From Ministeria vibrans ATCC 50519 (Eukaryota > Protista > Filasterea), in NCBI GenBank assembly GCA_943704425.1, contig CALSCP010001679.1, positions 83,430 through 147,429 on the forward strand: 64,000 nt of DNA. The letters are read 5' to 3'. Below are positions 31,434 to 58,790 of the stretch, piece by piece. Under the pieces are notes generated by a model that saw only the letters and a program-made list of their open reading frames with translations, had not been told where the DNA came from and searched no databases. The position numbers were made by a program, and so were the translations under genes. Positions within the stretch are counted from its first letter, which is position 1; every line of letters begins with the position of its first letter.

Positions 31434-31705
31434 GACATGTGTACCGAGGCACAGCAGTAGCGGCCCGTCTCATACTGTCCACTGGCACATCCAACGGCCC
31501 GCTGTTCGCGAGACAGCGCCCATTGCTCCGAAGGGAACTGTCCAAAGCCAAAGAGCGTTTCGCCGTCGTCGACGTGTTCGTCGACGCGCGTGTGAACCAC
31601 GCCCTCCCTCGCCAGCCCAGCCTGCTCCTCGCCCCCGCCGTCGCCTTCACCCCTTGCCATGGTCACGACAAGCGCCCCAAGGACAACCGTAGCCACCCAG
31701 CGCAT
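21238..31705 (-). CDS. Giant secreted protein (~3405 aa): signal peptide, Cys-rich CxxCxxGxY (TNFR/ephrin-receptor-like) repeats, disintegrin-like units and ~20-25 FN3/Ig-like repeats; exons 31705-31445, 31354-31260, 31182-30977, 30893-21238
   Basis: Signal peptide MRWVATVVLGALVVTMARG. Repeats such as CAAGTYS/CTGGRYS, then CLIDGVCY and CGALADACDLQEYCTGATYMCPTD. Recurrent W..x.D.ESG / NGAGL / SDG..vDxTxP units. No C-terminal TM. Exons sum to 10218 nt, in frame. Confidence 0.85.
23428..23464 (-). repeat. (TCG)n coding microsatellite, poly-Ser
   Basis: About 12 GAC units on the + strand. Confidence 0.9.
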
Positions 31706-31892
31706 CGTGTTTCTTCACAAGAATAAAATTGGCGAGATTTTTGCGCGGAAAGATTCGATTATTTTTTTGCATCACGCGATCTTCATCTCTTATCTATCAC
31801 GCAATAACTTCCATAGTTCAGTATTGACTGATATATTAATTTCTTCTTCGATCCACCCACTGGAGCTTCGCCAGCTTGCCCGATCACGTACC
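31706..31892. promoter_or_regulatory. Putative bidirectional promoter between the two giant genes
   Basis: 187-bp AT-richer spacer between two divergent signal-peptide start codons (31705 on -, 31893 on +). Inferred from layout only. Confidence 0.6.
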
Positions 31893-34800
31893 ATGCGGCT
31901 GGCGTTCCTCTGGCTGCTTGCTGTGGCGCAGTGCAGCGTGGTTGTCGTCGCACATATTTGTCAGCCGTGTGAACCAATCGCCTCGTTCGACTACCACTAC
32001 CGCCAGCAAGGCGGCCTCTCGGGGGCTGCGTGGCACTCACGTGGTGCGGGCGATGTCGCGGTGTCGTGTGTTGCCCACGACCCGGCGCGTGGACTCTGCA
32101 CTGTCGCCGTTGACGTCGCCAACCTTGTCGTCGAGATGCACGCCCACGCTGCCGCCCCTGCGCCCGCCGCGACCCCCCACGCCCGTCGAGACGCTCGTCT
32201 GTACAACATGCCAACGCCTCCGGAGCTCCCGCTCGTCCTATCGACGCCTGCAAAGGCCGCACAGAAAGTCGAGCAAATGCGCCGGGCCATAGACGACGAG
32301 CTGGAGCTCTACCACGACTATATGGCCGCCAGCTTCTCCGTGCGACTCGACACCACGTTGGATGCGGTTCACTCGATTGAAGACGATGACGATGACGCGC
32401 CCGTCCGCTCCGAAGACGACAAGGTGCCAGCGCGCATCCGTCGTGCACGTCGCTCCCTCCGTGCTCACGTAGCCTCTCTGCTTCCCTCCTACCTCCAAGA
32501 CGCGCCTTCTTCGTCCGCCTCCCACGATGATGATGACACTACTTCTCACCATGCGGACGTGTTTGGACGCTATCGTCGTGACACCATTGAGCCCGAGAAG
32601 TGCGACGACAACACTTGTCAACACCACTTTCGTCGTGTGTTTCCCTCGCTTGCCTGGGACCGCGATAGCACTCAGCGCGTCACGGTCGACCGTGAAACAC
32701 GACTCCTCAAAGAGTCCGTACGCACCGACATCTTCACAATGCGACACAAACACGAAGCGTCCTCAACACCACCGCGCGACCACGATCGCTTTGACGCACT
32801 ACACGCACGGCTTCACGCACGCAGCTCCGGTCAGGGCGCCTACTCGAGCCCAGACGACACCGTCGACTACGAAGACGAAGAAGCAGCGGGTGGTTCCAGT
32901 GCAAAGACAGCCACCAATCATCATCATGTGGTGACTACATGGCACCAGGCGTCTCTTGTGCACATTGGCTCGCGGCCCACATCACGCCGCAGCTCTGACT
33001 CATCCTTCTCGACTCCCTCGCCCGCCTCTCGCTGGACTCATCTTGCCGACATGGTCGACACATCGCCCGAATTTGAGGGCATGCCCGCACACACCTGCGA
33101 GAACTGGCTGGTCGACGGTGGCGGTGTCACCGGCCCACGCGTTCACAGCATCTTCTCGCTGCTGTTGCACCCTGAGAAGGCTGCCGACGAAGACGCCCTT
33201 GCCGAACTCGCCTCGGAGACTACAGCACTTCTTGCGTGCGTCCCTGGCTCGCCCAGCGCCCTTGCACAGCTGCTCCCGTGTCACTCGGCACGCTCACTCG
33301 AGTCCGACGGCTTACCCGTCGTCACACGCGACCTCCTTGTGGGAGCGTTCATCACGTGCGCCACCAACGAGTGCCAAATGGAGCTCGCCGAGCTCCTCGA
33401 TTGCTCGGTGGACGCTGCCCTTTCCAATGCGTCCTTTCCTTTTGAGTACACGGTGGACCGTGGCGCGTACGGACGCGCTGGCTCCTCTGCCACGGCTGGT
33501 CCGTGGGCCGTTTTCCTCGAGTCCACACAACATCAGCTATTCAACTTACCCCGTGCACCCATCCCGTCTCTTGCACGCGCTATCCTCAGCGTGGCCACTC
33601 TTCACATCCAGCTGTTTACCGATCTTGTTGCCATGTCCTGGCAACTCGTGGGTCACTCGGCACGCACCGCCTGTGGCAAAGACGCCCACAGCGACGTGTG
33701 TCTCTCACTGGTCACCTCCATTACCGACGCCTCGTCGTATCTCAGCACCGTGCCCGCGAGTGCCGCCGACGAAGTTGTCACTGCGAATATCCTTGGTGCT
33801 GCAGCCGTTGTCGGTCGCGACCACCACCCACGTCTCATTGGTGTGCTGACACACCACTTGAGCTCGCACGAGTCTACTTTTGTGCGCCGCGCCGCTGTAG
33901 AGGCTCTCAGTCGCGACCATGCTTCTGTTGACGTTCAACGGCTGCTCATCTACACGGCGGCAAACTTCAGTCAGGTGAGCCTCGTGCGCAAAATCGCAGC
34001 CGAGTCGCTCCGTACCACCGTCACCGAGCCTGAACTGGTCACGCTGCTGCACGACACACTTGTGAAGGTGCACGCCGATGCACTCGTTGAATCCATGGCG
34101 CTGCATCGTCGCGACAGAGCCCACTTTACCGGCGCGCTCCACGGCGAGGCACCCTCCACCGAAGTCGTGTGCACCCTTGCGCGCACCATCACCGTTCATG
34201 TCGACAAATCCGCAGACGACACCGCTGCCAGTGACGCCATGATGCACTCTCTCAAGAGACGTGTCGCTCTCATGTCGTACAACCGCGAACAGGCTCTTTC
34301 GGTGGCCGCAGACGCGTCGCGCTCCGTCGCCGTTGTGGACTCCCTCACGCGTCAGCGTCGCGACCTCTATGACTTTCTCAAGGCAGTGCGCATCCCGGAA
34401 CGCATCGAACCTCTTCTCGACATCCGCCTCTCCTACTACAAGCTGTGGAACAAGGACATTGGCAATCCTCAGGTGGGTCTGCGTCTGCGCGCCGACGCAC
34501 GCAACCTCGTCAAGTTTGTCATTGACATCTTTGGCGTCGATTTTACGGTGAGCCTTGACAACTTTGTCGAGGCACGTGCCTACGTGTTCACGTACGAGAA
34601 GATTCTTGCCGACGCTCGTGCCATCTTCAAGGCCCAGTTTGTCTTGCTCAATCCACTCATCAGTCTCCTTGAGATTCCCCTTGATGTTGGCCGGGGTACC
34701 GTCCAGTCTGTTGCCACTCGCACCGTCGGTTTCCTCGCCAAATGGCTCGACCGTTTGCGCGAATGGCTCATCTCCACGCTCGGCGATCTCTCCCGCATCC

Positions 34801-40800: not shown

Positions 40801-43800
40801 GTGGTCCCATCAAACTGGTGTCGACAGGTCGCGTCTCCGTCAGCGCCTACCCCGGTGGTCTGTACTTCTACGCCACCGACAATGTCCTTTTGGTGTGCGA
40901 CGACTATGCTCCGGGCATTGAAGAGCGCGCCGTACCCCTGGGCCATTTGAGTGCAGGTCAGTCGCAAGTGTTCCTATACAATGTGAATCCGTCCACTGGC
41001 GCCATTGCTGCTGGTACGCAGCCTCGTCGCACGTTCAAGGCGGGCCTCAACGTACGCGGTGTGGCACTGACGAGTCGTGCAGGCTTAAACTTGCTCGCGA
41101 TTGCCCGTTGTTCGTACGCCGCCGATTTTCAGTGTCGCCTCGAGCTGCACGAAATTGCCTCGTCGGGCGGCATTCTCACGTTCCAGCCCACATCCAACAC
41201 GCTTGTCAAGACAATTTCGACACCGCGCGGTCTCGAAGACATTGACGGAGATGCCTCGCGCGAGCTTATCGCCACCGTCTTCTCGTCAGCATCGCGCGCG
41301 GTGCTCACAACTGTGCTTGAGGTGGGCGGCATTCCCGACGACCATGCCTACTTGATGCGCGTGCCACCTCTCAAGAATGTCCCTTGGTCCGTGACGGCCG
41401 ACTGGCTGCGCGTGTGTCGTCTTACCCTCACCGGTGGTCTCACCACAGTGATCGACCGCCCGCTGCTCAACCTGGGCGCAAGCGACCTCGGTTCGACCCC
41501 ACTCGGTCCTAATTGCCGCGCCAATATCGGCGGCGATCTCTTTCAGACGCTGCTTGAGGCTATTTCGCCCCAGCAGGCCGAAACACAGTACGAAGATGCC
41601 AAGGTGTACATGTCCAATGTGAACGACCACATCAAGGCCTTTGTCGTGCCTCTGCCCACGCAGCTCAGCGGTCTCCTGCCTAAGCTGGCGCGTGCCGCCG
41701 ACTACCTTGCTTCGTGCCGACTTGCCGTTGGCTCGCGCACCACTACGCTGTCCGATGTGGACGCTGCACTCGCCTATGTGACCGCCTACCTTCCGGAGAA
41801 CTTTGAGTCGCTTGTGGTTGCTGGCCAAACTCGCATTGGCGAAGTATACCGCTTTGCACACAATGTGTTGCCAAGCAAGGTGACTGCCGACGTGTCGTGG
41901 GTGAAGGATGATGCAAGCATCGTCGACAAGGCATTCTTTGATGACACGTGTGCCACCACGTCGCTTGCAGATCGCGTCACGCGTACACACTCAGCGCTTG
42001 CCACATTGCGCGCTCATCTCGCCGATGCAACTGCCTGGAACGCGTCGTCGTGCGCCTCTGCTGGTCTCGACACGCTCATAGAGCAACTTCGTCGCGATCT
42101 CATGAGCTACTCGCCCTCCTCTGTGGGTCTCGTTGTGGGCGCACGCGAGGCAGCCTCGCGTGCTGCCGCTCTCAAGACCGTGGTGGATTCGCGCTTTTGC
42201 AATGGCTTTGACACCTCTCTGTTGTCGCTGCAACAAACTATCGCCAGTGCGCGTGCGGCTGTCGAGCGCACCGCCACGGACGCCGCAGCATTATGTACGT
42301 TCGCCGTTGACGCACTCGACAGTGTACTCTTTTTGCGACTCCCGGCCAGCCTGGCGGACGATATTCGCGCCATGCACGGCTATGCGGGCTCGGCACGCAT
42401 CGACGTGCACGCTTGCTTTGCTTCAAGCACACAGTCGACTGTCAGTGCCGCCAATGCCAAGGTGACGTCCATTGAGTCGCTCCTGGCGCGTTTCCGCCAC
42501 ACCTCGTTTGTCAGCTGCCGTGCCGACATTGTGCAGCAACTTGCAGTGGTGCGCACGGTACTTGCCAATGGCGATTTGGCAACGCGCGGCAACGATGTTC
42601 TGGCGCTCTTCCGCACCGTCGACCAGTGCCTTTTTGCCGGTGTGCTGCCCAGTTCACTGGATACGACTGTCGCCGATCTGTGCAGCACGGTGACATCGCT
42701 GCGCAACTCACTGGACACGCTCAAGGCGAGTGCGCTCTCCGACGAGGTGTCCACCGGCATCTCCAAGTCGGCCAAGTTGCTTGCGTACCTGACGTCGGGT
42801 GATCTCGACCAGGACTTGAGTGAGGAGACGCCGCCTGCAACAAGCGAGCGCAACAAGGACTGTCTGGCGGTGCGCTTTACGCTCATCCAGCGTCAGTACC
42901 ACAAGCTGTTTGACATTAGTGTGCAATTTGTGGTCATTGTTGTGCCAGTTGAGGTGACCGTCCGCGGCTTTCTCTTCTTCCAAGTGGAGCTTGAGGCAGC
43001 GCTGTGTGTGTCCGAACGCCGCTTCGACGTGGCCGTGCTCCCTGGCGCCGGCTTCAAGATCACGGTGAGCGCCGGTGTTGGCAGCAAGTACTTCATCCTG
43101 CTGGGCCTGGAAATCTCGGGCATTGTTGTCGACTTGGTGCTGCGCCCCGTGCTCAGTGCTGAGCTGGTCAACGGCGGCATCTCGCCATGCTTTTCGGTGT
43201 ATCTCGACTCGCGTGGGCTCACGATCTCGCTCATTGCGTTTGTTGAGTCTCCGATTTTCCTGTGCAAACTCGACCTGAGCACTGTGTCGTCGGTGCTCAA
43301 GCGAATCAAGCGTGATCGCCGTGATGTTGGTCCTCTCACCATTGGCGGCTATGAGTCTTCAACGCTCGGTCAGTACGATCCGTATCACGACGACGTCGCA
43401 AGCGAGTCGGCACAGCTGCGACTCTCGGCCGCCGACGCACGCTGGTACAGCAGTGTGGGTGCACTTGCATCGCCGCGACGGTATGGAGTGCAGCGCGAGG
43501 ACCAGAACGATCCGCTCGGCGTTGGTCTCTACCAGTACATTCCGATCCACGAGTACTCCAAGGGCTTGGTGCGTACGCGCCAACGCCGCGGCTTTGGCAA
43601 GTGGGCCAAGAAGGCAGTGAAGAAGGTGTCCAAGGTGGTGACCAAGGTGGGCAAGGTCATTGTGAAGGCAGCAACGCAGGTCGCGCAGTTTGTGCTCGAC
43701 CTCATTCCTGGTTGTGTGCCCACCAACGACAACCGACTCATCGAATGGGCTTTTTTCACGTGGAATCAAAAGAGCGCCAAGTCGTGGCAACTGTTGCGAC

Positions 43801-46800
43801 TGTGCTTTGGCGAACCCGATCGAACGGGACCACCCCAGCCGTTGGTGAAGGCATCGTACGCTGGCGATCGGCTCACCGTCAAGTTCTCCGTGCCGGCCGA
43901 CGACGACTCCGAGGTCAACAAGGTCACTGTGAGCGTGACGGGTGGTACGGCGGCGACGCTCTCGCCCACGGTCAGCGAGTATGTGACCATAGTCACGTGC
44001 AAACACGGCGAGACACTGCATGCACTGGTGACCACCGTGAATGCGGCTGGACTGCGCGCAACCGGTCGCGATACCGCCATCTGTGATCGCAAGCCACCCA
44101 TTGTGCACCGATTGCGCATTGCGAGTGCGTCGTCGGATCTCGCAAACTTGCGTGTGCTCTGGGACGATGCTGTCGACGTTGGCGACTGTTGTGTCTCCTT
44201 GATGGAAGTCACAGTGGTTGTTGCGGGGCGGGGCTACTCGGGCGCAGCGACCCTTGTGAACAGCGATTCGCATGCGGCCGTCTTGGGCAACCTGGTGTTT
44301 GTGTCGGGTGATCGGGTGCGTGTGGTGGCGCGCGTGCGTGACAGTGCCAACAACGAGGCCTTTTACTGGTCCAACGTGTGTGTGATTGACACGGAGCGAA
44401 TCATTGTTGCCACCAACGACACCGACTCGTTTGTGGTGCACCTTCACAATGGACGACGCCACGCGCCCACACAAAATGTGGCAGATCGTCTTGTGGTCGA
44501 GTGGAACACGCCCGAAGTGATGGGACCGTCGGGTGCCGGCAGCTACTCGCTGTGCGTTGGTCTGAGCGAGTATGCGTGCGACGTGCAGCCCCTTGTCAAT
44601 GTGGGTCTGCCGCGCGGCAACTTGTACACTTTGACAGGACTGGAGTTGAATGACACCGTGCGCTACTTTGTGAGTGTGCTGCCGGTGAGCGGTGCGGGTC
44701 TCAATGCCTATTCCATGGGCACAAGCGCCGGCATTGTCATTGACTTGGTGGCGCCCACGTTTGACGTGGTCGTGGACGGTGATGCAACAGTCGACGTCGA
44801 CTACTGGTCACTTGTGTCGTCTGTTGCCGCTCGCTGGGAAGTCTTTGATGCGGTCACGCCCGCCGCACTAGTCACTTGCTCGTTATCGACGCGCGACGTG
44901 GTTCCCCTCTTTGGACAGGTGCTCGCCGAGACGAGTGTACCGGCGGGCTCGACGAGCGCCCGTCTGCCTACGACTCTGTTGCCGGCGCATCGGTATCGCA
45001 CGAGGGTGTCGTGCCGCGACGAGGCTGACAACGAGGTGACGGCCGAGACTGACGGTTTCGTGGTCGATGTCACCGCTCCCCTTGAGATTGGCGACGACCT
45101 TGTGTTTCTGGGCGGCGAAGCGGCCACCGACTGGGCCAATGGCGATCCGTCGCGACCCGCTCATTTTGTGGGCACAACCAAAGCAGACGCACTCGCCTTC
45201 TCGTGGATTCCCACCATTGAAAATCTCTCTCCGCCCGTCTCGTATCACCTCTGTGTTGGCTCGGCGCCCGAGTTGTGCGACATTATCTCGGCTGTGTCGC
45301 TGAACAACGCAACGCGTGCCGTCGTACGCAGCGACCTTAACGTCAATGTGACGCTGCTGCACGGTCAAGTGTACTACGCTACGGTGTTCAGCTCGAACCT
45401 TGCCAATCTTACGTCCGTCATGGTGTCGCGCCCCATTGGCGTTGATCTCACACCGCCCTACGTGGCACAAACACCCAAGACGACTCTGGCTGATGTGGGC
45501 TCCGGCAGTCACAATGGATTCACGTCGAATGCGCGCCGCTTTGCAATGCGTGTACACAATGCCATGTTTGATCGTCAGAGTGGCCTTGCCGAGTGTCGTG
45601 CCGCCTTCATTTTGGGCGATGAGTGCTCCAGCGCAAATGTAGTGTCACCGTTGCTTGTTGTAAACATTTCAGTGGCATCTGTGGTTGAGCGTTACGTCTT
45701 GGAGACACTGCCAAGTGGCACACGCGTGCGCGGTCTTCTCCAATGCACCAATGGTGCCCGCCTCACCATGACCGCCTGCACAGCGGGTGTCGTTGTCGAT
45801 CGAACCGCCCCCGAAATTATCAACCTTCGCGAGGTGGGTCTGAGTGCTGTGCACTCCCGCGACAACGTCGACTTTGTTCACAGCATGACGGGTCTTGCGG
45901 CAGTGTTTGGTGTGCGCGAAGCGGAGAGTCTCGTCGCGAATGTGTCGGCGTGCCTTGTCTCGACGCAGCGCGGTCTTCTTCGTTGCGAGACGGTGTCAGC
46001 TGTATCCAACGACGCCGACGAGTACGTGTGGCTTGTGCCAGCGGACCTGAGCAGCACGTTTGTGAGTGGCGAACGTGCCTTTGTGGAAGTGACCGCGGCG
46101 AATGTTGTCGGCTGGAAGGCGCGTGCGTCTTCGGACGGTGTTGTGCTCGACACAAGTGGCCCCGTGCTGCGCGACGCCTTTGTTGGACGGTCTTCTGTGA
46201 GCATTGGGGCGTGGAACGAGCTGACGGGCATCGACGTGCGCGTTGATGCAAGCGATCCCGAAAGTGCCATAGCACTGGTGCATGCCTACGTGGAAGTGAT
46301 GGACGGCCAGACGCAGTCGGTCACAAGCGCCTCGTGGTCCACAGCGGCGGTAGGGGGCACCTTCACGCGAGTGATTGCCTCGCTGACACAGGGCGCTTGG
46401 CACCGTGCACACATCGCCGTCACCAATGGTGCGGGTGTGCGCAGTGCAAACGACATACTCATTTCGAAACGCTTCTTTGTCGATGCCACCGCGCCGGTGG
46501 TGTCGGGACACCCCGAGTCGCTCGTGACGCCCTCTCAATCGCGTGTGTTCTCCGCAACGCGTCTTGGTCTGCCTGAGCTTGCATTGCCAACTGCAACCGA
46601 TCTTGAGAGTAGCGTGCGCGAACGTGAAATGCTCGTGTACACGGCACAGCTGGTGAATGACAGTGCGGACGCGTCGCTTGCGTCCAACTGGTCGCCCCTG
46701 CAGCTTTTGCGGCGCGTCACTGTTACACCATTCTTTGCCACGGTGACCATTAGTTTCAGCAAGACGCCAGTGCCAGCGGGTGCCACGCTGATCGTGCAAA

Positions 46801-55800: not shown

Positions 55801-58790
55801 AGTGGGTGGTGACGACGACGGAGGAGGAGCCCGTGGCGGGTCAGGTTGCGGTCGCGTCCGAAACCCATTCGATTGTGCGCAACAACGTCTTGTACGTAGG
55901 TCCGCAGGGCGCTGCGGTGGTGCGCTGGCGTGAAGCGTGTGTGGGTGTAGAGCAGGCGCCGGTGAATGGCACAAGTGAGGCGGCGCTTGCCTTTCAGGCG
56001 GTCGATGCTCCGCTGGACTACTTTGTGGTGCGCCTGCATGATGCGCTGCTGGTGCAACGCGAGCACGTTGACGGCGGAAATAAGACGAGCGAGGGACTGC
56101 TGTACGAGGTGAATGTGACGGCAAATGCATGTTGCTCCAATGTGTTTGGATGCGGCACGAATGAGTGTGAGCGCTCTGTGGTGATTCCGCTGAGCGCACT
56201 GCCCGACGATGGCGAGGCCCTTGTGAGTGTGGAGGCTGTGGATCGCAGTGGGCGCGCGGCGGCGACGTACTCGGGCACGAGTGTACGTGCGGTGCTGACG
56301 GGTCCACAGGTGGCCCACGACGACGTGGTGCTGCTCGACGGTGACGAGCCGACAAGTCTGCCCACACGCTACTTCTGCCACGCGTCTGGCTTGACGGGAC
56401 GCGTGACGTTGCCGGTCGAGGAGCGCATGGACGATGGACCAGTGCGTGTGCGAGTGTGGGTGGGCAGCGATGAGTTCCTCGACAACAAGCAGGCACCCTA
56501 TGTGCTTCGTGAGGCGACGACGGGAAACGACACGACAGCTCTGGTGCAATTGCCCGACTTGACGTTCCCCGGGCGCAACGAAGGCGAGTTTGTCTTTTTG
56601 ACGGCCGAATGGACCAACGAGCTCAACCTGACGACGGTGCACACTGCGCCAGCGCTCATTCTGTGCGGCGCTCCGTTTGTCGTGGCGAACGGTACGGTGC
56701 TGGATGGGGTGTCAGGGGCGGATGTGGATGAGGTGGGCAATGCGGCGTCGATGGCCTTCCGCCACGGCCATGTGTTCAACGTGAGTGCGTGCTTTGCGTG
56801 GGAAGTCATGTCCGTGTTTACCAAAGACGGCGGCATGCTGCTCTTCCCGAGCCTCGAGGCCGCTGGCGAGCTCATCTACTGCGCCGACCTGCAGTACGAG
56901 GCAATGGTGACCACCGACCCACTGGCGAGTGTGCCCGACATTAAGAACTTTACGGACATTGGCAATAAGCCGTACTTTGGCATGGACCTTGTGGCGCCGC
57001 ATCTGCTGCAAAAGGACCAGTTAACTTTTGTCTGCGTGCGCGCTGTCACCGAGCACGGTCTGCAGTCATCAACGGTGTGCTCGGACGGCGTTGTGCTGGG
57101 CGAGCGGCAGTGGCAGCAGAGCAACCGCACGTCGGGTACCGTGATTGTGGATCAGGCGAGCGAGTGCTTCTTTGTGGCGTTTAGTGATGTGGAGGACACG
57201 GCGGTGGCCGCCGCGACGCGCTGTGCGTCCACCAACGAGACGAACTCGAACACATCGGCAGCGGCCCAGATTACGCTTGAGGCGGGTACCGTCGACGACG
57301 CATACATGTTCTACTTGCGCGAGAGCAACTTTACTGGCCTGGACTGTGTTACCGCGCACGATGTGGTGGCGCCCGGTGGCGTGGCGTGGACGCTCGGTGC
57401 GCGCTTCATGAACGGCAGCGAAGCGCCCGACTTGGTGCTGCATCGACCTGTGCGTGTTCTTGTGGTGTTCAATCTTGACGGTGCGCACGACCATCAGTTG
57501 CTTGCGGGCGAGCAGCCCGAGCTAGTGTATCTGAGTGGGCGTGCAGGCGATGAGTGTGTGGGAGCGGGAGCGACGTGTCCGCTTGCGTCGCGCTGGCAGT
57601 GGTACGAGCAGGCGATGAACATGCTTGTGGTCGATGTGTGTGCGCTGGGCACGTACACCTTTGTGTACACCAAGACACGCGTTGCCTTCCGCAACGAAAG
57701 TGCCGACTACACTGTGAGCTGTACAGCATTCCCCGATGAGCCACTCGATGCCTTTGGCTCGCCCGTCGCCTACCTCTCCCTCTCGCCGGTCGACACGCTC
57801 GCGACCAACGTGTCGCTCTTTGCCAATCTCACGTGCCATCCGCGCATCACCAAGCGCACGTCGGTTGCACTTGATGGCTTTGAGTATGGCGTGGAGCAGA
57901 CAGTGACGCTGACGGACGAGTGGGGTCCGATCGTGCGCCTGCACAACGACACGCTTGTGTTGGAGTCACGAAACATCACACAAACGACTCTCGCTGACGG
58001 CACAGTGGTATGGCAGGAGATGTTCGAGGACTGTGATGGCGACTGGCCAGACGCAGTGGTACGGGACTGGAGCGCATTCAATGTCACCGACGACTGCTAC
58101 GCAGAAGCTGATTTGCTCTTTGAACCGGTCACCATGGTGACGGGCGGCGCTGATTGTGGTGCTTGGCGTCGCTACGTGTTCCGCGTCGCTGATCCATGTG
58201 GCAAAGCGGCGACGCTGCATGTGGAGCAGCTGCGGCCCGAATCGGTCACGCTGATGTCGTTGGAGAGTAATAGCGGAGACGCCACGACCAGTGTGGCAGT
58301 CATTGGGTACATATGCGTGGGGATCTTGCTTTTCGCAGTCATTGTGCTCGTTGCGGCGGTGCAGTGGCAGAAGCAGAAGGAGAGGAGGCGAAAGCACGGG
58401 CGACTGGACGATGTCGACGCAGCAGCAGACGAGGCGGACTATGCAGCGGCGCTCAAGGCAGTCTCCAAGCCGGGTGTACTCGAGTGGACGCGACGCGAGT
58501 CGAGTGAGGCTGAGGCCGAGATGCACAATAGTCTTATGGACCTCCGTGGAGCATCATCGACCAGCATGACACGGCTGTTTGACTCGCGCCAGTCTGAGTC
58601 ACAGCTGAGCTTTGACAATGTTGTTGTGGCCAATCCGGCGTATGTCGCCGGCGCTATGAGTGCTTACGAGGGGAGTAATTATGAGGAATGCGCTGCAGAT
58701 GGTATTGCGTGTGACAGCGACACGTTTTCACCCGGTGCCTTTCAGGACATTCGAGACGAGTGGAAACGACGAGAGAGTCGCGGTTTTTGA
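31893..58790 (+). CDS. Giant type-I membrane protein (~8965 aa, single ORF): signal peptide, lipid-transfer (vitellogenin_N/LLT)-like region, amphipathic helices, EGF plus 2 VWA, propeller-like region, ~30-40 FN3/Ig-like repeats, TM and NPxY tail
   Basis: Stop-free for 26.9 kb. Signal peptide MRLAFLWLLAVAQCSVVVVA at 31893; the upstream ATG at 31659 overlaps the opposite gene. HEAT-like VRRAAVEALSR. EGF CxNGGTC motifs. MIDAS DNSAS and DNSGS with TDG/SDG. DxESG/NGAGL/DxTxP repeats from ~43830 to 57100. TM 58293-58367. FDNVVVANPAY at 58611-58643. Confidence 0.9.
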   Translation: MRLAFLWLLAVAQCSVVVVAHICQPCEPIASFDYHYRQQGGLSGAAWHSRGAGDVAVSCVAHDPARGLCTVAVDVANLVVEMHAHAAAPAPAATPHARRDARLYNMPTPPELPLVLSTPAKAAQKVEQMRRAIDDELELYHDYMAASFSVRLDTTLDAVHSIEDDDDDAPVRSEDDKVPARIRRARRSLRAHVASLLPSYLQDAPSSSASHDDDDTTSHHADVFGRYRRDTIEPEKCDDNTCQHHFRRVFPSLAWDRDSTQRVTVDRETRLLKESVRTDIFTMRHKHEASSTPPRDHDRFDALHARLHARSSGQGAYSSPDDTVDYEDEEAAGGSSAKTATNHHHVVTTWHQASLVHIGSRPTSRRSSDSSFSTPSPASRWTHLADMVDTSPEFEGMPAHTCENWLVDGGGVTGPRVHSIFSLLLHPEKAADEDALAELASETTALLACVPGSPSALAQLLPCHSARSLESDGLPVVTRDLLVGAFITCATNECQMELAELLDCSVDAALSNASFPFEYTVDRGAYGRAGSSATAGPWAVFLESTQHQLFNLPRAPIPSLARAILSVATLHIQLFTDLVAMSWQLVGHSARTACGKDAHSDVCLSLVTSITDASSYLSTVPASAADEVVTANILGAAAVVGRDHHPRLIGVLTHHLSSHESTFVRRAAVEALSRDHASVDVQRLLIYTAANFSQVSLVRKIAAESLRTTVTEPELVTLLHDTLVKVHADALVESMALHRRDRAHFTGALHGEAPSTEVVCTLARTITVHVDKSADDTAASDAMMHSLKRRVALMSYNREQALSVAADASRSVAVVDSLTRQRRDLYDFLKAVRIPERIEPLLDIRLSYYKLWNKDIGNPQVGLRLRADARNLVKFVIDIFGVDFTVSLDNFVEARAYVFTYEKILADARAIFKAQFVLLNPLISLLEIPLDVGRGTVQSVATRTVGFLAKWLDRLREWLISTLGDLSRIPSIMFDSLPKLFDWRFKTLKSFDPLGFLRGLFKWQDTERSKSNFDWWRLRDRLFTFLRNTLGRLRLSWNWPTWKWLESSMEETRERSRGPLISFDWFRRLLDWMRSLPKLARAVRDDSGGPLSLGFTCLADIGQDFRDMFTSLSNSAHISTTMTSSAVEVVSSASSVVTSAARVATVLADSSLTRVLGQIDLIVNADDNAMTATLIGELVVNIDEALLDLGVLKPDQCSCTRLKPTCNVTADRCTTTNPCANGGTCVNEGFSTVRCQCAPGFSGPLCRFAVESGDAQCPTSANTDVCLNGGTCVDRSTTSSSASSHLDVTLMIDNSASMGQTDMTRALAAAQLLVDRLGDNDRVAVYTFARCGGCASSDSPLNVPLLAQAFLRLGETDVGGSGKTGREYVAETFSQRVTFGLTSGSTWTVLWDTLHESINYTLTNRLASNRPIVVALTDGDDKSSDTNSYANDDSDEFPDGDLAGAAGLDDGNPRDDFGDAYVGADGIDGGVTRAPLPVFTIGLGLGPGSEQLLQEVGRTSDGGDYFTAITSDELATIYTSVSETITNQHACVCPAGFAGTRCDKRVDPCLSSPCLFGGQCHDTRDGAFACTCAAGFTGLRCDVNLAECTLLETTTTTTSSSLCSDPLIADVDPCAASPCANGATCTRLGSNVTCTCAAGFRGSRCRYIARADDTFCTSASSHRCLSDATCIERSTTVSTPLDVVLTLDNSGSMKDDPADMERLLEAAEALVSRLGDDDRVAIFTFNECGSCVAGNALNTPLRVQSLVRLGDASASAGLTGRELTIKNIREQVDIGIDGSGTWTTLWDTVYAAIDFAVSSTVAGRRSVVIAMSDGDDTSSAINGYANNDQDEFPDGDAAGVLGLDDGNVRDDYGDAYGGADGIDGGVCNAPVPVFAIGLSGLGFTAATERAMREMALTSAGGAYYAAASSVELAAVYTSVSQTIVTTHECLCPPGFTGDACETDLDECLSSPCQHGGTCVDGHDTFTCICPAEYTGLMCHVLTRQCHTTTSSANTTSFASLSSNNAKCPASATGVCDCTSRVALRETPLGSVMVFAEKLLRVVSWARETVSIVSLIEPFRSAAAKLISCLPDLSFVDVGINAMVHLQSLVNNIADFGLNKVAEFTGKLQVAADSLHTWAHDASLSLQTGANGLIDNVAEAVEGVFDEIPDMITNVLSPVRVVVDTFVKFVPNITAIEGHLRDFQVPAVDDLIRALLDAFDLDSLLSDPNSVVGRFIARVAAPLLPAFDTARDFVDGFSDHTQFQSPVVNNTQIHLLQSLLSNASTVHDTSSPIHDGVVGNTCSAPGAGSRNIPASDDFDLPTDLPFDELGKALDIDLVDLIMSKLREIKERVVDWFSGLEWVQGIDSKLKLLVEPLEKVRLTLLAIVDQIKKPLLFLADIDGFSLALKETLTDTISAALKGVIVDLRARFTTMLADVRATIDGILTGVFERTEGLINRFRGPFNTVLNTITRVRSLYGSFELIAKDTPSGMFAFALSLDSKTAQVLDHVEYGSFFALNGIHDADMWIDRLLMLRDCLGDIRSRAFATSTLCVPGLPCAFDEFRATISAVVRPPVAALQTIVGTVRRATEPQVISLAGELNTVIASVNVDVLARINLATSAAQEYMHKFASFDFSKIRNFFTRSDSPSLTQVIDYIDNNPQFQSVLGFIDKANGTIVKVLDVVDKAQGWVTKFMPPAPADRRRATDPPVTAVARILEKILDSGDVFEKGLDFFDKANSALDKWLEDPRLKKVRPIIEGAQEMLGKAETFVEKAQTVVPVVTRAIGDLEVMPQKLLTMLLTLDMPDLTTFFPDATSVQDARNSLPLPAYCGTVLSTDLALCPLQLPFEIEPLNVLRQTLITFNLMSASSSRFPHTRFVVPGLFQDYLPGGTAIYTYASSPMRLIVMRHARTFMHQPSALLAMTDAGDVMAFFRLFEQDGDTPHYGNTAGLAVARDTLWVSDGSLDETTGLRRQQLVSFSMTDVQAGLALGAAGGPIKLVSTGRVSVSAYPGGLYFYATDNVLLVCDDYAPGIEERAVPLGHLSAGQSQVFLYNVNPSTGAIAAGTQPRRTFKAGLNVRGVALTSRAGLNLLAIARCSYAADFQCRLELHEIASSGGILTFQPTSNTLVKTISTPRGLEDIDGDASRELIATVFSSASRAVLTTVLEVGGIPDDHAYLMRVPPLKNVPWSVTADWLRVCRLTLTGGLTTVIDRPLLNLGASDLGSTPLGPNCRANIGGDLFQTLLEAISPQQAETQYEDAKVYMSNVNDHIKAFVVPLPTQLSGLLPKLARAADYLASCRLAVGSRTTTLSDVDAALAYVTAYLPENFESLVVAGQTRIGEVYRFAHNVLPSKVTADVSWVKDDASIVDKAFFDDTCATTSLADRVTRTHSALATLRAHLADATAWNASSCASAGLDTLIEQLRRDLMSYSPSSVGLVVGAREAASRAAALKTVVDSRFCNGFDTSLLSLQQTIASARAAVERTATDAAALCTFAVDALDSVLFLRLPASLADDIRAMHGYAGSARIDVHACFASSTQSTVSAANAKVTSIESLLARFRHTSFVSCRADIVQQLAVVRTVLANGDLATRGNDVLALFRTVDQCLFAGVLPSSLDTTVADLCSTVTSLRNSLDTLKASALSDEVSTGISKSAKLLAYLTSGDLDQDLSEETPPATSERNKDCLAVRFTLIQRQYHKLFDISVQFVVIVVPVEVTVRGFLFFQVELEAALCVSERRFDVAVLPGAGFKITVSAGVGSKYFILLGLEISGIVVDLVLRPVLSAELVNGGISPCFSVYLDSRGLTISLIAFVESPIFLCKLDLSTVSSVLKRIKRDRRDVGPLTIGGYESSTLGQYDPYHDDVASESAQLRLSAADARWYSSVGALASPRRYGVQREDQNDPLGVGLYQYIPIHEYSKGLVRTRQRRGFGKWAKKAVKKVSKVVTKVGKVIVKAATQVAQFVLDLIPGCVPTNDNRLIEWAFFTWNQKSAKSWQLLRLCFGEPDRTGPPQPLVKASYAGDRLTVKFSVPADDDSEVNKVTVSVTGGTAATLSPTVSEYVTIVTCKHGETLHALVTTVNAAGLRATGRDTAICDRKPPIVHRLRIASASSDLANLRVLWDDAVDVGDCCVSLMEVTVVVAGRGYSGAATLVNSDSHAAVLGNLVFVSGDRVRVVARVRDSANNEAFYWSNVCVIDTERIIVATNDTDSFVVHLHNGRRHAPTQNVADRLVVEWNTPEVMGPSGAGSYSLCVGLSEYACDVQPLVNVGLPRGNLYTLTGLELNDTVRYFVSVLPVSGAGLNAYSMGTSAGIVIDLVAPTFDVVVDGDATVDVDYWSLVSSVAARWEVFDAVTPAALVTCSLSTRDVVPLFGQVLAETSVPAGSTSARLPTTLLPAHRYRTRVSCRDEADNEVTAETDGFVVDVTAPLEIGDDLVFLGGEAATDWANGDPSRPAHFVGTTKADALAFSWIPTIENLSPPVSYHLCVGSAPELCDIISAVSLNNATRAVVRSDLNVNVTLLHGQVYYATVFSSNLANLTSVMVSRPIGVDLTPPYVAQTPKTTLADVGSGSHNGFTSNARRFAMRVHNAMFDRQSGLAECRAAFILGDECSSANVVSPLLVVNISVASVVERYVLETLPSGTRVRGLLQCTNGARLTMTACTAGVVVDRTAPEIINLREVGLSAVHSRDNVDFVHSMTGLAAVFGVREAESLVANVSACLVSTQRGLLRCETVSAVSNDADEYVWLVPADLSSTFVSGERAFVEVTAANVVGWKARASSDGVVLDTSGPVLRDAFVGRSSVSIGAWNELTGIDVRVDASDPESAIALVHAYVEVMDGQTQSVTSASWSTAAVGGTFTRVIASLTQGAWHRAHIAVTNGAGVRSANDILISKRFFVDATAPVVSGHPESLVTPSQSRVFSATRLGLPELALPTATDLESSVREREMLVYTAQLVNDSADASLASNWSPLQLLRRVTVTPFFATVTISFSKTPVPAGATLIVQMLAVNNNGLSTLSQALAVTVDTSPATVSPPRVWGTAISADATRSVYMVVDTSTSTPVELCFAVDAVDSESGVIQLAIEVGTIADSSAFGVSSLVAATADPATSTKVCVSGDASLLNSGVALYATAIATNGAGLGSLARSAPLFVDNTPPDTSAAVVTLSPTGLQAVPFTWWDVSFTHASPCVSVVGVSEPESRIEQAWVNIVMVNTSQVVARLTLSDMQVAGRTQACFASHLVAAQHLVAGFVYRADVIVENAAGLNASVSSTEFLVDTSAPRAPTAVELVLTDGTLVGSCAPLKHSLTVRWSGAYDVESASLATSMAWTSVVNNKIATPDLEAFQPVVSTASTSELSSPLFVDGMQLVVWIRVRNAAGAYTMARSQVVRLVNAAPEIVSLTLASANTSTRTCTTNATHLRVHWKLNSARASSLCGGTRIVLSVGTTRGAHDLVAGGTAYAAADWADNEAYADVPLVSGISSGDRLYLSASASSVGLTSVLEVERSVVVDTTPPVSSFASSFTIAQARQSCGTTASAWHVSRSDTLAMSWDAPVDTHSSVTKVSLSFGSAAGLDDEGIWLPATPSTTQLIVPLSVSWTRVYVRMEAWSCDGALVQREDFGPIVVHADDTLALTTASLSLMPTSAVQGHLDRIMVNTSALALWSAAHEIESLVAVVADASCVVAPQAIRYALESSASTVTVPGVLVNGVHATVVFYATLCSGLELAPVCSSPVHVVAGAPSVARATLSANVVSVNDTLTVSLWNVSHAVLTTGFSVSVVASRAGQAPWEVASVASFDEGNFNVSVVSPVATAGTVSLTARVCSLATVCVYHDLGVVTVDATAPLDLDFDVEVFGSNRSSLAVAVSGVARDEESRVASCSARLDGTSAVEWTLLAIDGGQELTGQVTPIDWSQESHTVNVSVSCRNGAGLDSAWTHVASVNASLFVESLPTAILSSPVLTQVDSVTVSWRAAQLGFQRPISYAATIAVRDDQGERVYHATELASTRRSWTTLIRSVDQPHMGEVVRVRANVTAHFADGLALQGAGAEAIALTHHKWVSVLSDAYVARTSNVTGIITLPSSAPGASIRSHLTVGHLPGSSSVGSIVHTRVNASWTVGMPVGETAVSGETVFASMGACFVEMQRPCADAVTHSLTVDDSAPLGEIVPTQEWQNNATHLATSLVGVRDPESGVESCTVTLSDYNTTRVLGTHVSNDGFKLRETVHVPFTMPLTELTRVRVGAVCVNKAGLVAALVTNTVVTVVPDEQPIALANLTMTTSSGSVECATERSVVDVTWVVPDTTTLARLASTSFQFSLANSISAVSSVDFEWIDVHDGHVSAVLESSHVGTVYGYMRLVSRTGVTHIQQVGRPLIVGGALSTQTSFGLTSVSIEAASGASCVDSSLSLLTVRVQLPSLALCALQFLEVSASLRTSDQVYVVSPSVHSVDEVSAEAQTNETSTVFLKVRLSDVLRASNAGSRRVLQGAQLQATVTARGGVTSSTGGAPVMLSDSLSSNTVTLSSPANMRAMVVHVEASRSDSSVVAPVPTPAYVPVLVDASGTVTLSLRWVHSMEAMANEVESILVALVDDDTRETVLEYATASLEHNATRATVVWPATLASAQGRDLRPIVRFYWCTGEAVDVETMARVRLDGSAPVVGEARVRGDDSRSDGRPLQVAQLRRDTLLIDVARLRDAATFVANVVVLIRDATATEESTGACLDEASADDPAVQSAVYDATVGVVHAALAHPLSLNKAYTVTLWARDSVGLVSNATCAGVVYVETLNATVAGSIELTTTTMLACTSNAATGRTLLSWPALLTNPDAAYSVGLRLVVANSMLVTPLTRWLPVGAVQAVNASLSAGVYAVSVVAQHKTRASVVLRGTCVVPVVADSLQPFVGEGWSDAEDLQWISSTAQRLPVHWQGFASSTVSCTLRVSSNVSVFGLSETVPASSSGLIVVNVSSLASDTNVLALYVTLECQLSDGRTQRATSNGVRIEQASTSASAVSVERTVVVRGELALVRVSWLAENDEFASVAGVHLSVDVGDGFALAGPVWDTRAAGVVELALMYAHNGSFVTPTSAHGLVASATVTPVSAVGASGTPLTSINSTLEHTTPSVWGVTLNTTLTASTRTVSVAWQSHGGDQTWINVEDATSATVLSRTDVLGETFTSAVVAVPVSAGVDTRVSVCVGMHSEQSTCASMRLPIDTSAPLVLGTIPIRGKTVDGGTVFVNASESVQVLLSRAMVDPESMLTRCYVGVRWEGNANVDDSQVSTIEVAAAATLVVPLADLLVNVSTSMVADARLEITCANEWQLTAESTTDTFVIVMGDAPVSASVRVAPTGVGSDSVLVNASLGVADALVDAPLTVLVNASLVGGGSQARLRSLVSGVDVYVHSAASGESLGVWSLNVSQWLETGAVSVVLPPSVHLLVGNTSATVNVFVAISVATSPRRIWSSALAQLRLHARVHSATHVVHSVAFSSAIQKSQWAFAVSWSLHTNTVRGNTGFECAVRSLAVCLGLRRFECDLVSFREVSLGASGTTVHAANMVVAGTSVYATVRVEDCWERRSFAVAAQPVLVDPTGPVFTGGVRVRVNASDVAALLMGLSVTPAMTNSVDTVRRTEETLLVEWGPAYDWESGVVCNASLVLSNTTTSVLDIDELSMAGDGTQVTTFNLSAIPLEHGARFEVLIMCTNGAGDVASRRSSTVTIDALPPVCGDDGTGNQNSTVLEWRRPMRSASTPVWLERMQAYVWDGTGIMSYASTVFDDASEGTPSSLAATWLTVDEQVLSSTEQVWSTAVGRAGSTASAAVRLNVTDIWSNLTQDGRAHQLAVTSLDSAGYACAHAVSIALDTSVPQMKAMESPLAAVEAVQANVSFVADAEWLTVNNVPVFYDDESGVNEVVVEVLDEGRYSACNRSAAAEARVALLRADDTSLFDSTNLRSVNESEPSSLLVSSVNATNAQVPVSTSLVVGSTVVVVDSWNSSLAIANGSVLVDTALRTGHAHRVRVWARGVAGKSAYVQAEWVVTTTEEEPVAGQVAVASETHSIVRNNVLYVGPQGAAVVRWREACVGVEQAPVNGTSEAALAFQAVDAPLDYFVVRLHDALLVQREHVDGGNKTSEGLLYEVNVTANACCSNVFGCGTNECERSVVIPLSALPDDGEALVSVEAVDRSGRAAATYSGTSVRAVLTGPQVAHDDVVLLDGDEPTSLPTRYFCHASGLTGRVTLPVEERMDDGPVRVRVWVGSDEFLDNKQAPYVLREATTGNDTTALVQLPDLTFPGRNEGEFVFLTAEWTNELNLTTVHTAPALILCGAPFVVANGTVLDGVSGADVDEVGNAASMAFRHGHVFNVSACFAWEVMSVFTKDGGMLLFPSLEAAGELIYCADLQYEAMVTTDPLASVPDIKNFTDIGNKPYFGMDLVAPHLLQKDQLTFVCVRAVTEHGLQSSTVCSDGVVLGERQWQQSNRTSGTVIVDQASECFFVAFSDVEDTAVAAATRCASTNETNSNTSAAAQITLEAGTVDDAYMFYLRESNFTGLDCVTAHDVVAPGGVAWTLGARFMNGSEAPDLVLHRPVRVLVVFNLDGAHDHQLLAGEQPELVYLSGRAGDECVGAGATCPLASRWQWYEQAMNMLVVDVCALGTYTFVYTKTRVAFRNESADYTVSCTAFPDEPLDAFGSPVAYLSLSPVDTLATNVSLFANLTCHPRITKRTSVALDGFEYGVEQTVTLTDEWGPIVRLHNDTLVLESRNITQTTLADGTVVWQEMFEDCDGDWPDAVVRDWSAFNVTDDCYAEADLLFEPVTMVTGGADCGAWRRYVFRVADPCGKAATLHVEQLRPESVTLMSLESNSGDATTSVAVIGYICVGILLFAVIVLVAAVQWQKQKERRRKHGRLDDVDAAADEADYAAALKAVSKPGVLEWTRRESSEAEAEMHNSLMDLRGASSTSMTRLFDSRQSESQLSFDNVVVANPAYVAGAMSAYEGSNYEECAADGIACDSDTFSPGAFQDIRDEWKRRESRGF

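Follow-up and report, generated by a model that had tools for sequence, protein, structure and literature searches.

A lineage-specific loop with two convertase-type site clusters and a lysine-only amphipathic helix in a giant FN3-stalked surface protein of Ministeria vibrans

Convertases mature a number of surface receptors into heterodimers, of which Notch (at its S1 site), integrin alpha and MET are familiar examples, whilst in the class I viral fusion glycoproteins and the GAIN/Stachel systems of the adhesion GPCRs (G protein-coupled receptors) proteolysis yields a functional N-terminal peptide on the fragment that stays anchored. Amongst the antimicrobial peptides (AMPs), Styelin-like peptides are made as prepropeptides (PMC9966394), and it is well established that large proteins can harbour encrypted host-defence peptides (PMC8308739, PMC12848717). 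We report the analysis of positions 43260-43720 of a window of 64,000 nucleotides from Ministeria vibrans ATCC 50519 (assembly GCA_943704425.1, contig CALSCP010001679.1, positions 83,430 to 147,429 of the forward strand). The stretch lies inside an open reading frame (ORF) of 9043 codons that encodes a giant type I surface protein, and it is taken from the alignments to be an insertion of about 150 residues that replaces a Cys-rich, aromatic linker between strand 6 and strands 7-8 of a beta-module sitting atop an FN3 stalk. Our favoured interpretation, which is tentative and falls short of probable, is that this is a lineage-specific, convertase-processed loop and that the cut would expose a tethered cationic helix able to bind anionic surfaces.

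An initial annotation of the DNA had proposed a furin-excisable loop that would unmask a cecropin-like helix on the membrane-tethered fragment. The in-frame translation of the stretch is exactly the string described there: a Cys, the cluster KRIKRDRR, a spacer, the cluster RTRQRR, a cationic 28-mer and, at the end, Pro-Gly-Cys, the spacer having 83 residues by our count. KRIKRDRR amounts to two overlapping R-X-[K/R]-R sites, RIKR/D and RDRR/D (aa 3882-3888, where '/' is the predicted cut), and the same pattern is fitted by RQRR/G (aa 3974-3977) in the second cluster. The 28-mer begins exactly behind this consensus R-X-R-R, at G3978, as the annotation had it; it opens Gly-Phe-Gly-Lys-Trp and has nine Lys, no Arg and no acidic residue. 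Inspection of the sequence C-terminal to the helix reveals no dibasic or R-X-[K/R]-R site, so that the helix would remain on a membrane-anchored chain of about 5000 residues, and release of a free peptide is unlikely for the same reason. Coordinates of all the features are collected in the table below.

Within its own protein the 28-mer is an exceptional segment. When all 9015 28-mers of the protein are ranked, windows over this segment occupy all the leading places in helical hydrophobic moment (0.65-0.70) and in net charge, which reaches +12. The protein as a whole contains 1.6% Lys and 5.7% Arg, Arg being 3.6 times the commoner; a given 28-residue window would hold nine or more Lys with a probability of 3.5e-10, which becomes about 3e-6 for the protein as a whole, and the probability that all nine basic residues of the segment are Lys is about 1e-6. 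When the 28 residues are shuffled 200,000 times, a single shuffle attains the observed moment (P = 5e-6); the moment spectrum has one sharp peak at 100 degrees per residue, and all nine Lys fall inside a 140-degree arc in a single helical phase that holds over 26 residues, at a mean hydrophobicity of about 0.04. The nine Lys, the lack of acidic residues and the amphipathic spacing that had been noted at the outset are thus all present, and the moment is the highest in the protein. Even a lax filter for comparable segments (charge of at least +6, moment of at least 0.5, no Pro) passed no other segment of the giant protein, of the five other long ORFs of the window or of six homologues, about 32,000 residues in all. 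The anatomy of loop and helix is real and lies far beyond chance.

The stretch is not a retained intron or other non-coding insert, since the frame is open, the GC content at third codon positions (GC3) is 0.60-0.83 over loop and helix, and codon use is coding-like, the nine Lys all being encoded by AAG, the preferred codon. Tandem Repeats Finder detects a weak two-copy DNA similarity within the helix (period 12 with 2.2 copies, period 21 with 2 copies). A simple tandem-repeat artefact was considered and set aside: the similarity is only weak, and the spacing of the Lys by three to four residues is unlike that of a plain repeat.

The homologues show where the loop has been placed. An exhaustive phmmer search over 1.84 billion representatives with the region aa 3601-4075 returned seven proteins with E values of 3e-6 to 1.6e-4, which derive without exception from metagenomic or SRA assemblies. 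Their matches are confined to query residues 124-270 (aa 3724-3870), the beta-module with Cys3869 at its end. This module is the sole part of the region with detectable homologues, which are 25-33% identical to it; several of them are giant (2504-6776 aa), and none of those scanned gave a Pfam match. The alignments reveal a common architecture of beta-module, linker, a conserved W-x-W ... C segment and an FN3 array, to which P0001 adds a C-terminal transmembrane (TM) segment. The module has conserved Cys, Pro and Gly positions and strongly hydrophobic strands. It has no Pfam or PDB-sequence match and finds only unnamed clusters in the ESM Atlas; a profile search of PDB sequences gave weak FN3 monobody matches only, and in three fold searches with the five-sequence model described below the match lists were filled by the FN3 domain. 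The module has the appearance of a domain family not yet described.

Where the loop would be, the homologues that cover this position (P0001, P0004, P0005, P0006, P0007/P0010 and P0011) have a linker of about 30-35 residues with 4-5 Cys and 16-25% aromatic residues, the net charge of which ranges from 0 to +11 over the stretches of about 50 residues that were scored, two being strongly cationic (+11 and +6). The window protein has about 150 residues at this position, with a single Cys, Cys4019, which in the alignments probably corresponds to the Pro-Cys of the homologue linkers. The insertion status of the stretch is thus directly visible, and the loop, both site clusters and the helix are, as judged from these alignments, lineage-specific. 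The composition of the linkers is noteworthy in itself: Trp, Phe and Tyr account for 16-25% of the residues against a background of 7-10%, and Cys for 10-14% (P0001 aa 726-775, P0005 aa 482-533, P0006 aa 1495-1544, P0007 aa 290-341), and that of P0001 is strongly cationic, with +11 in 50 residues. The linkers of P0001 and P0007 also have a short F-G-K motif in common with the start of the 28-mer, which may be a vestige of common origin. Since the linkers are aromatic and Cys-rich and two of them strongly cationic, an exposed sticky or cationic element appears to be recurrent in the family at this position.

Structure models are consistent with this division of the region. The AlphaFold2 (AF2) model made from the single sequence is poor (predicted local distance difference test score, pLDDT, 32), yet it already contains a helix at aa 3978-4014. 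With a five-sequence alignment (A1) the mean pLDDT rises to 60 and the model places six long strands in aa 3735-3869 (pLDDT 70-85) and two further ones at aa 4019-4049, with a short helix covering the first site and another helix at aa 3979-4014; an FN3 domain follows at aa 4053-4147. In the same A1 model, the only one to which these figures apply, aa 3886-3991 fall below 50 as against 70-85 in the flanking beta-module. The spacer is on this model probably flexible, and the low confidence is compatible with an accessible loop.

The question of whether the sites could be cut was approached through topology, the gene content of the genome and the distribution of sites. With a signal peptide at aa 79-101 and a single TM segment at about aa 8879-8901, aa 3868-4020 are predicted to be extracellular; the convertase sites of aa 3880-3980 are placed by the sequence in the ectodomain and thus in the lumen of the secretory pathway, and the helix would, as the annotation proposed, be carried by the membrane-tethered fragment. 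The genome, searched for paralogues and convertases, comprises 29.7 Mb in 2860 contigs and is eukaryotic, with a full SSU rRNA match at 1750 bits. It has two loci in which a Peptidase_S8 catalytic domain is followed by a P_proprotein domain, the arrangement of kexin/furin-type convertases. Overlapping matches to R-X-[K/R]-R number 7 in the protein against 2.15 expected (P = 0.006). The further multibasic sites listed by the annotation at 32433, 32568, 34350 and 39927 are all present, and the one at 34350, RQRR (aa 898-901), is probably a conserved convertase site in the N-terminal region of the family, to judge from P0004 (24% identical), where RVKR lies six residues before the block that follows RQRR in the window protein; P0001 has RAKR in its N-terminal region. 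This positional conservation suggests that the family is a convertase substrate and, together with the encoded convertases, makes cleavage plausible. Near the N-terminus (32400-32580, aa 240-310) runs of poly-Asp alternate with RIRRARR and RYRR in a propeptide-like layout.

The sequence of events that we infer would run as follows. A kexin/furin-type convertase would cut one or both sites during secretion, converting the precursor into a two-chain receptor, the halves of which would be held together by their common beta-module and possibly by a disulfide between Cys3869 and Cys4019; such a cleaved-but-associated design fits the homologue alignments, which take in strands on either side of the loop. 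Cutting at RQRR would make the cationic helix the free N-terminus of the anchored chain, its C-terminal end being pinned near Cys4019. In that position the helix would bind, driven by electrostatics, to anionic surfaces (bacterial or prey envelopes or anionic lipids, for instance), either for adhesion alone or for permeabilisation as well.

Several results weigh against this interpretation. None of the homologues covering the position carries the loop, the helix or an R-X-[K/R]-R site there. Lack of conservation had been named beforehand as grounds for refuting the proposal, and as far as these very distant homologues allow a judgement the motif is indeed not conserved, the short Cys/aromatic linker standing in its place. 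Word-index searches with aa 3601-4075 of the whole protein, with the piece alone and with the alignment found no close relative, scans of viral, prokaryotic-genome and metagenome contigs found no relative of loop or helix, and in the organism's own genome neither the region nor the peptide has a paralogue, the query itself being the only match. As there is neither a close relative in the collections searched nor a paralogue, purifying selection on the motif cannot be shown. A weakly predicted helix covers the first site, the charge of the spacer offsets only about half of that of the helix, and the helix itself is modelled at a pLDDT of only 42-49, so that its placement relative to the beta-module is not fixed by the model. 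Finally, the N-terminus of a look-alike of the helix, T7 gp7.3, is reported to contact DNA rather than membranes (PMC11784390).

Database comparisons of the peptide bear on the word 'cecropin-like', which needs to be divided. The physico-chemical part stands: with a charge of +9, a moment of 0.65 at 100 degrees and an AF2 helix at aa 3979-4014, the segment is a cationic amphipathic helix like those of the linear alpha-helical AMP families. Family membership does not. Pfam scans at E <= 10 gave no match to Cecropin. The 43-mer (the window segment 43590-43718) has just two Pfam similarities, both sub-threshold: the better is to the Lys-rich N-terminus of T7 gp7.3 (VirionAssem_T7, PF11653; 17.9 bits against a cut-off of 25), the other to the tunicate AMP family Styelin, which scores 16.3 bits where 27 would be needed (E 0.013). 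A search of PDB sequences at E <= 10 found no AMP, the best match being an unrelated lyase (E 0.92) followed by T7 protein 7.3 (9jyz_1, E 1.2), and the ESM Atlas returned nothing for the helix. We read the resemblance to cecropin-type AMPs from these sequence searches as physico-chemical and not one of family. The T7 match extends over 36 aligned residues, with the pattern K-K-A-V-K-K-V in both, but it is insignificant and is read as compositional convergence. The N-terminus of gp7.3 is reported to be positively charged and to contact double-stranded DNA in the tail channel (PMC11784390); sequences of this sort need not be membrane-lytic.

How closely the locus approaches the described systems can now be stated. 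With the linear alpha-helical AMPs (cecropins, styelins, magainin/dermaseptin type) the segment shares a length of 28-37 residues, a charge of +8 to +9, a first 28 residues devoid of acidic residues, the 100-degree moment, Gly and Trp near the N-terminus and a hydrophobic C-terminal continuation, and with convertase-processed AMP precursors it shares the acidic spacer and multibasic site ahead of the peptide. It differs in matching no AMP profile above threshold, in being embedded at residue 3978, in lacking a C-terminal release site and in that it would stay tethered; it is not a small secreted prepropeptide freed at both ends but part of a 9043-aa type I membrane protein. The cryptides of apolipoprotein B and MMP-19 are alike in being cationic amphipathic segments hidden in a large multidomain extracellular protein and exposable by proteolysis, but they are released and usually have no dedicated flanking convertase sites, whereas the window helix has a textbook site, on its N-terminal side only. 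The furin-processed receptors (Notch at S1, integrin alpha, MET, the insulin receptor, LRP1 and the FAT cadherins) offer a parallel for the architecture as a whole, that of a giant type I protein with R-X-R-R in a putative flexible loop of an extracellular beta domain, in which both sides of the cut belong to one module, the chains are expected to stay associated and a bracketing disulfide is possible. Here, however, cutting at both clusters could remove a spacer of about 85-90 residues, the new N-terminus would be AMP-like and the beta-module is undescribed. Class I fusogens and the GAIN/Stachel systems follow the same logic of a functional N-terminal peptide on an anchored fragment, but the window peptide is cationic, being neither a hydrophobic fusion peptide nor a beta-strand agonist, and there are no heptad repeats, GPS motif or 7TM region. 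The components are all of known kinds; it is their combination that is new, in which a textbook site precedes an AMP-like helix that would stay tethered, together with a spacer that might be excised, an undescribed beta-module and a very long FN3 stalk.

Amongst the alternatives, the one that survives best, though we think it rather unlikely, is a helix that works without being cut. Its Val/Ala/Ile/Trp face would pack on the beta-module in place of the Cys-stapled linker and its Lys face would form a fixed cationic patch for glycans, nucleic acid or other polyanions, the multibasic sites being idle or serving routine two-chain maturation. The insertion does sit exactly where the relatives have their compact, hydrophobic and Cys-rich linker, and the strongly hydrophobic strands of the module fit such packing, but a packed helix that had nine Lys on its polar face and no acidic residue to pair with them would be unusual, and AF2, which is confident for the module, has low confidence for the helix. 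Similarly, a fixed patch is favoured by the two relatives that are strongly cationic at this position without any R-X-[K/R]-R site, and by the closest sequence look-alike, the N-terminus of gp7.3, which is described as positively charged and DNA-contacting; yet two site clusters around an unconserved, low-confidence spacer are hard to explain if the loop is never cut.

Somewhat less likely again is a recent lineage-specific insertion without function, tolerated in a loop of a huge, fast-evolving repeat protein, its AMP-like look being a compositional coincidence. The absence of the insertion from every homologue, and of relatives by which constraint might be revealed, is what this would predict. 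Giant surface proteins often gain insertions, as illustrated within this protein by a helical region of roughly 480 residues where P0005 has about 95. The weak tandem similarity of the DNA inside the helix (period 12 with 2.2 copies and period 21 with 2) would also suit such an origin, but a four-residue tandem repeat would drift in phase, whereas the spacing of the Lys holds one phase over 26 residues (P = 5e-6). Nor would coincidence readily account for the exclusive use of Lys in an Arg-rich, Lys-poor protein, or for a helix that begins exactly at a six-residue site with four Arg, and the codon usage is normal for coding sequence.

A bolder version of the favoured interpretation, in which the helix is part of a contact weapon or harpoon, we regard as distinctly doubtful. 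A protease-armed, membrane-active helix at the distal end of a stalk of about 40 FN3 units would capture or permeabilise bacteria or prey on contact. A new family of eukaryotic surface proteins, with tips that engage membranes, would then be defined by the beta-module and its tip linker, be this aromatic, Cys-rich or cationic, and in this species the tip would have been turned into a cleavage-activated, AMP-like helix. As to the suggestion in the initial annotation that lipid from such prey might be fed to an LLT-like module, Pfam detects only HEAT repeats in the N-terminal region, all sub-threshold, and nothing that bears on lipid feeding or on an LLT-like module.

That the protein is a classical AMP precursor, from which the cationic peptide is released in free and soluble form, is very unlikely. 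The order of acidic spacer, multibasic site and cationic helix is the layout of many AMP precursors, and encrypted peptides in large proteins are a documented phenomenon (PMC8308739, PMC12848717), but the helix has no dibasic or R-X-[K/R]-R site behind it, the chain continuing instead into conserved strands and the FN3 array, and no AMP family is matched at threshold. A class I fusogen-like device, in which cleavage would arm an N-terminal fusion peptide on the anchored subunit and so drive membrane merger, is extremely improbable and the analogy drawn by the initial annotation does not hold, for although the anchored chain would open with Gly-Phe-Gly directly after R-X-R-R, much as in the cleaved viral fusion glycoproteins, the peptide is cationic (+9, mean hydrophobicity about 0.04) and not a Gly/Ala-rich hydrophobic fusion peptide, an FN3 domain and not heptad repeats comes next, and some 4,900 residues of FN3-like stalk separate the peptide from the TM segment.

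To return to the convertase-processed loop with its tethered helix, if cleavage and membrane binding were true, a giant adhesion-type receptor of a unicellular eukaryote would possess a tethered AMP-like element that joins convertase receptor maturation, encrypted host-defence peptides and cleavage-exposed N-terminal effectors. This would suggest a route by which free AMPs could arise from surface proteins and would provide the first functional handle on the undescribed beta-module family, now represented by the seven metagenomic proteins. If the motif is neutral, it is a curiosity in a fast-evolving orphan protein. A search of DNA for recurrence of the arrangement with a stricter pattern gave 110 matches, and the ten that were inspected are nuclear-type, Lys-rich, low-complexity proteins with no pair of convertase site and helix; a looser pattern for Lys-rich helices in the genome was swamped by poly-A.

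Table. Features of the giant ORF and of the loop within it (window positions)
Feature	Positions	Strand	Basis
Giant type I surface protein, single open frame of 9043 codons	31659-58790	+	ORF list, translation
Probable true start Met79 and signal peptide, aa 79-101	31893-31961	+	hydrophobic peak at aa 83
RQRR, aa 898-901	34350-34361	+	11 residues before block conserved with homologue P0004
Conserved beta-module, six long strands, aa 3735-3869, ending in Cys3869	42861-43265	+	alignments, AF2
Cys3869, conserved in homologues	43263-43265	+	translation, alignments
First multibasic cluster KRIKRDRR, K3881-R3888	43299-43322	+	translation
Spacer D3889-V3971, 83 residues, net charge -4 to -5, pLDDT <50, lacking in homologues	43323-43571	+	AF2, alignments
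Second site RTRQRR, R3972-R3977, Arg at P1, P2, P4 and P6	43572-43589	+	translation
Lys-only amphipathic 28-mer G3978-A4005, charge +9, moment 0.65	43590-43673	+	computed
Hydrophobic continuation, aa 4006-4018 (hydrophobic to about aa 4016)	43674-43712	+	AF2 helix reaches aa 4014, then Pro-Gly
Cys4019 (PGC)	43713-43715	+	
Cys4019 and two more strands ending in conserved Cys4049	43713-43805	+	aligns with homologues (W-x-W ... C motif), AF2
First FN3 domain, aa 4053-4147	43815-44099	+	VIA Z 11.1, Foldseek FN3 matches
Array of FN3-like units of about 110-125 aa	44100-58292	+	internal similarity
Single strong TM segment, about aa 8879-8901	58293-58361	+	sequence

The remainder of the host protein can be described briefly. 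The first domain after the loop is indeed, as had been proposed, the start of an FN3-like stalk: aa 4053-4147 superimpose on the DCC FN3 domain 5x83_C (VIA Z 11.1, root-mean-square deviation 2.3 A, 90 of 95 residues) and match tens of other FN3 entries at Z 9.4-11, although Pfam fn3 is not detected by sequence for this first stalk unit. Internal similarity of the FN3-like units is detectable as far as about aa 6200 and then again at about aa 7640; the array forms the last half of the protein and EGF and VWA domains, identified with Pfam, occupy the first third. A propeller-like block (aa 3028-3242) upstream of the beta-module is also common to the homologues. The gap between the two measures roughly 480 residues here, compared with about 95 in P0005 and about 340 in P0001, and in its helical-looking part of about 430 residues, aa 3300-3734 (41556-42860), a Cys recurs every 50-60 residues or so. 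We read this region, from the comparison of lengths, as a second large lineage-specific expansion.

The antisense ORFs gave no Pfam match, and a search of Rfam gave none either. The neighbours of the giant ORF are genes for a second giant FN3 protein, for a protein with a TPR array and for an EGF-bearing one. The first ATG of the giant ORF lies 78 codons 5' of a typical signal peptide (31659-31892), and the real start is probably Met79, at 31893. At the other end, a cytoplasmic tail of about 140 residues (58362-58787) contains NPAY, of the NPxY type, and a basic stop-transfer cluster, KERRRK, just past the TM segment.

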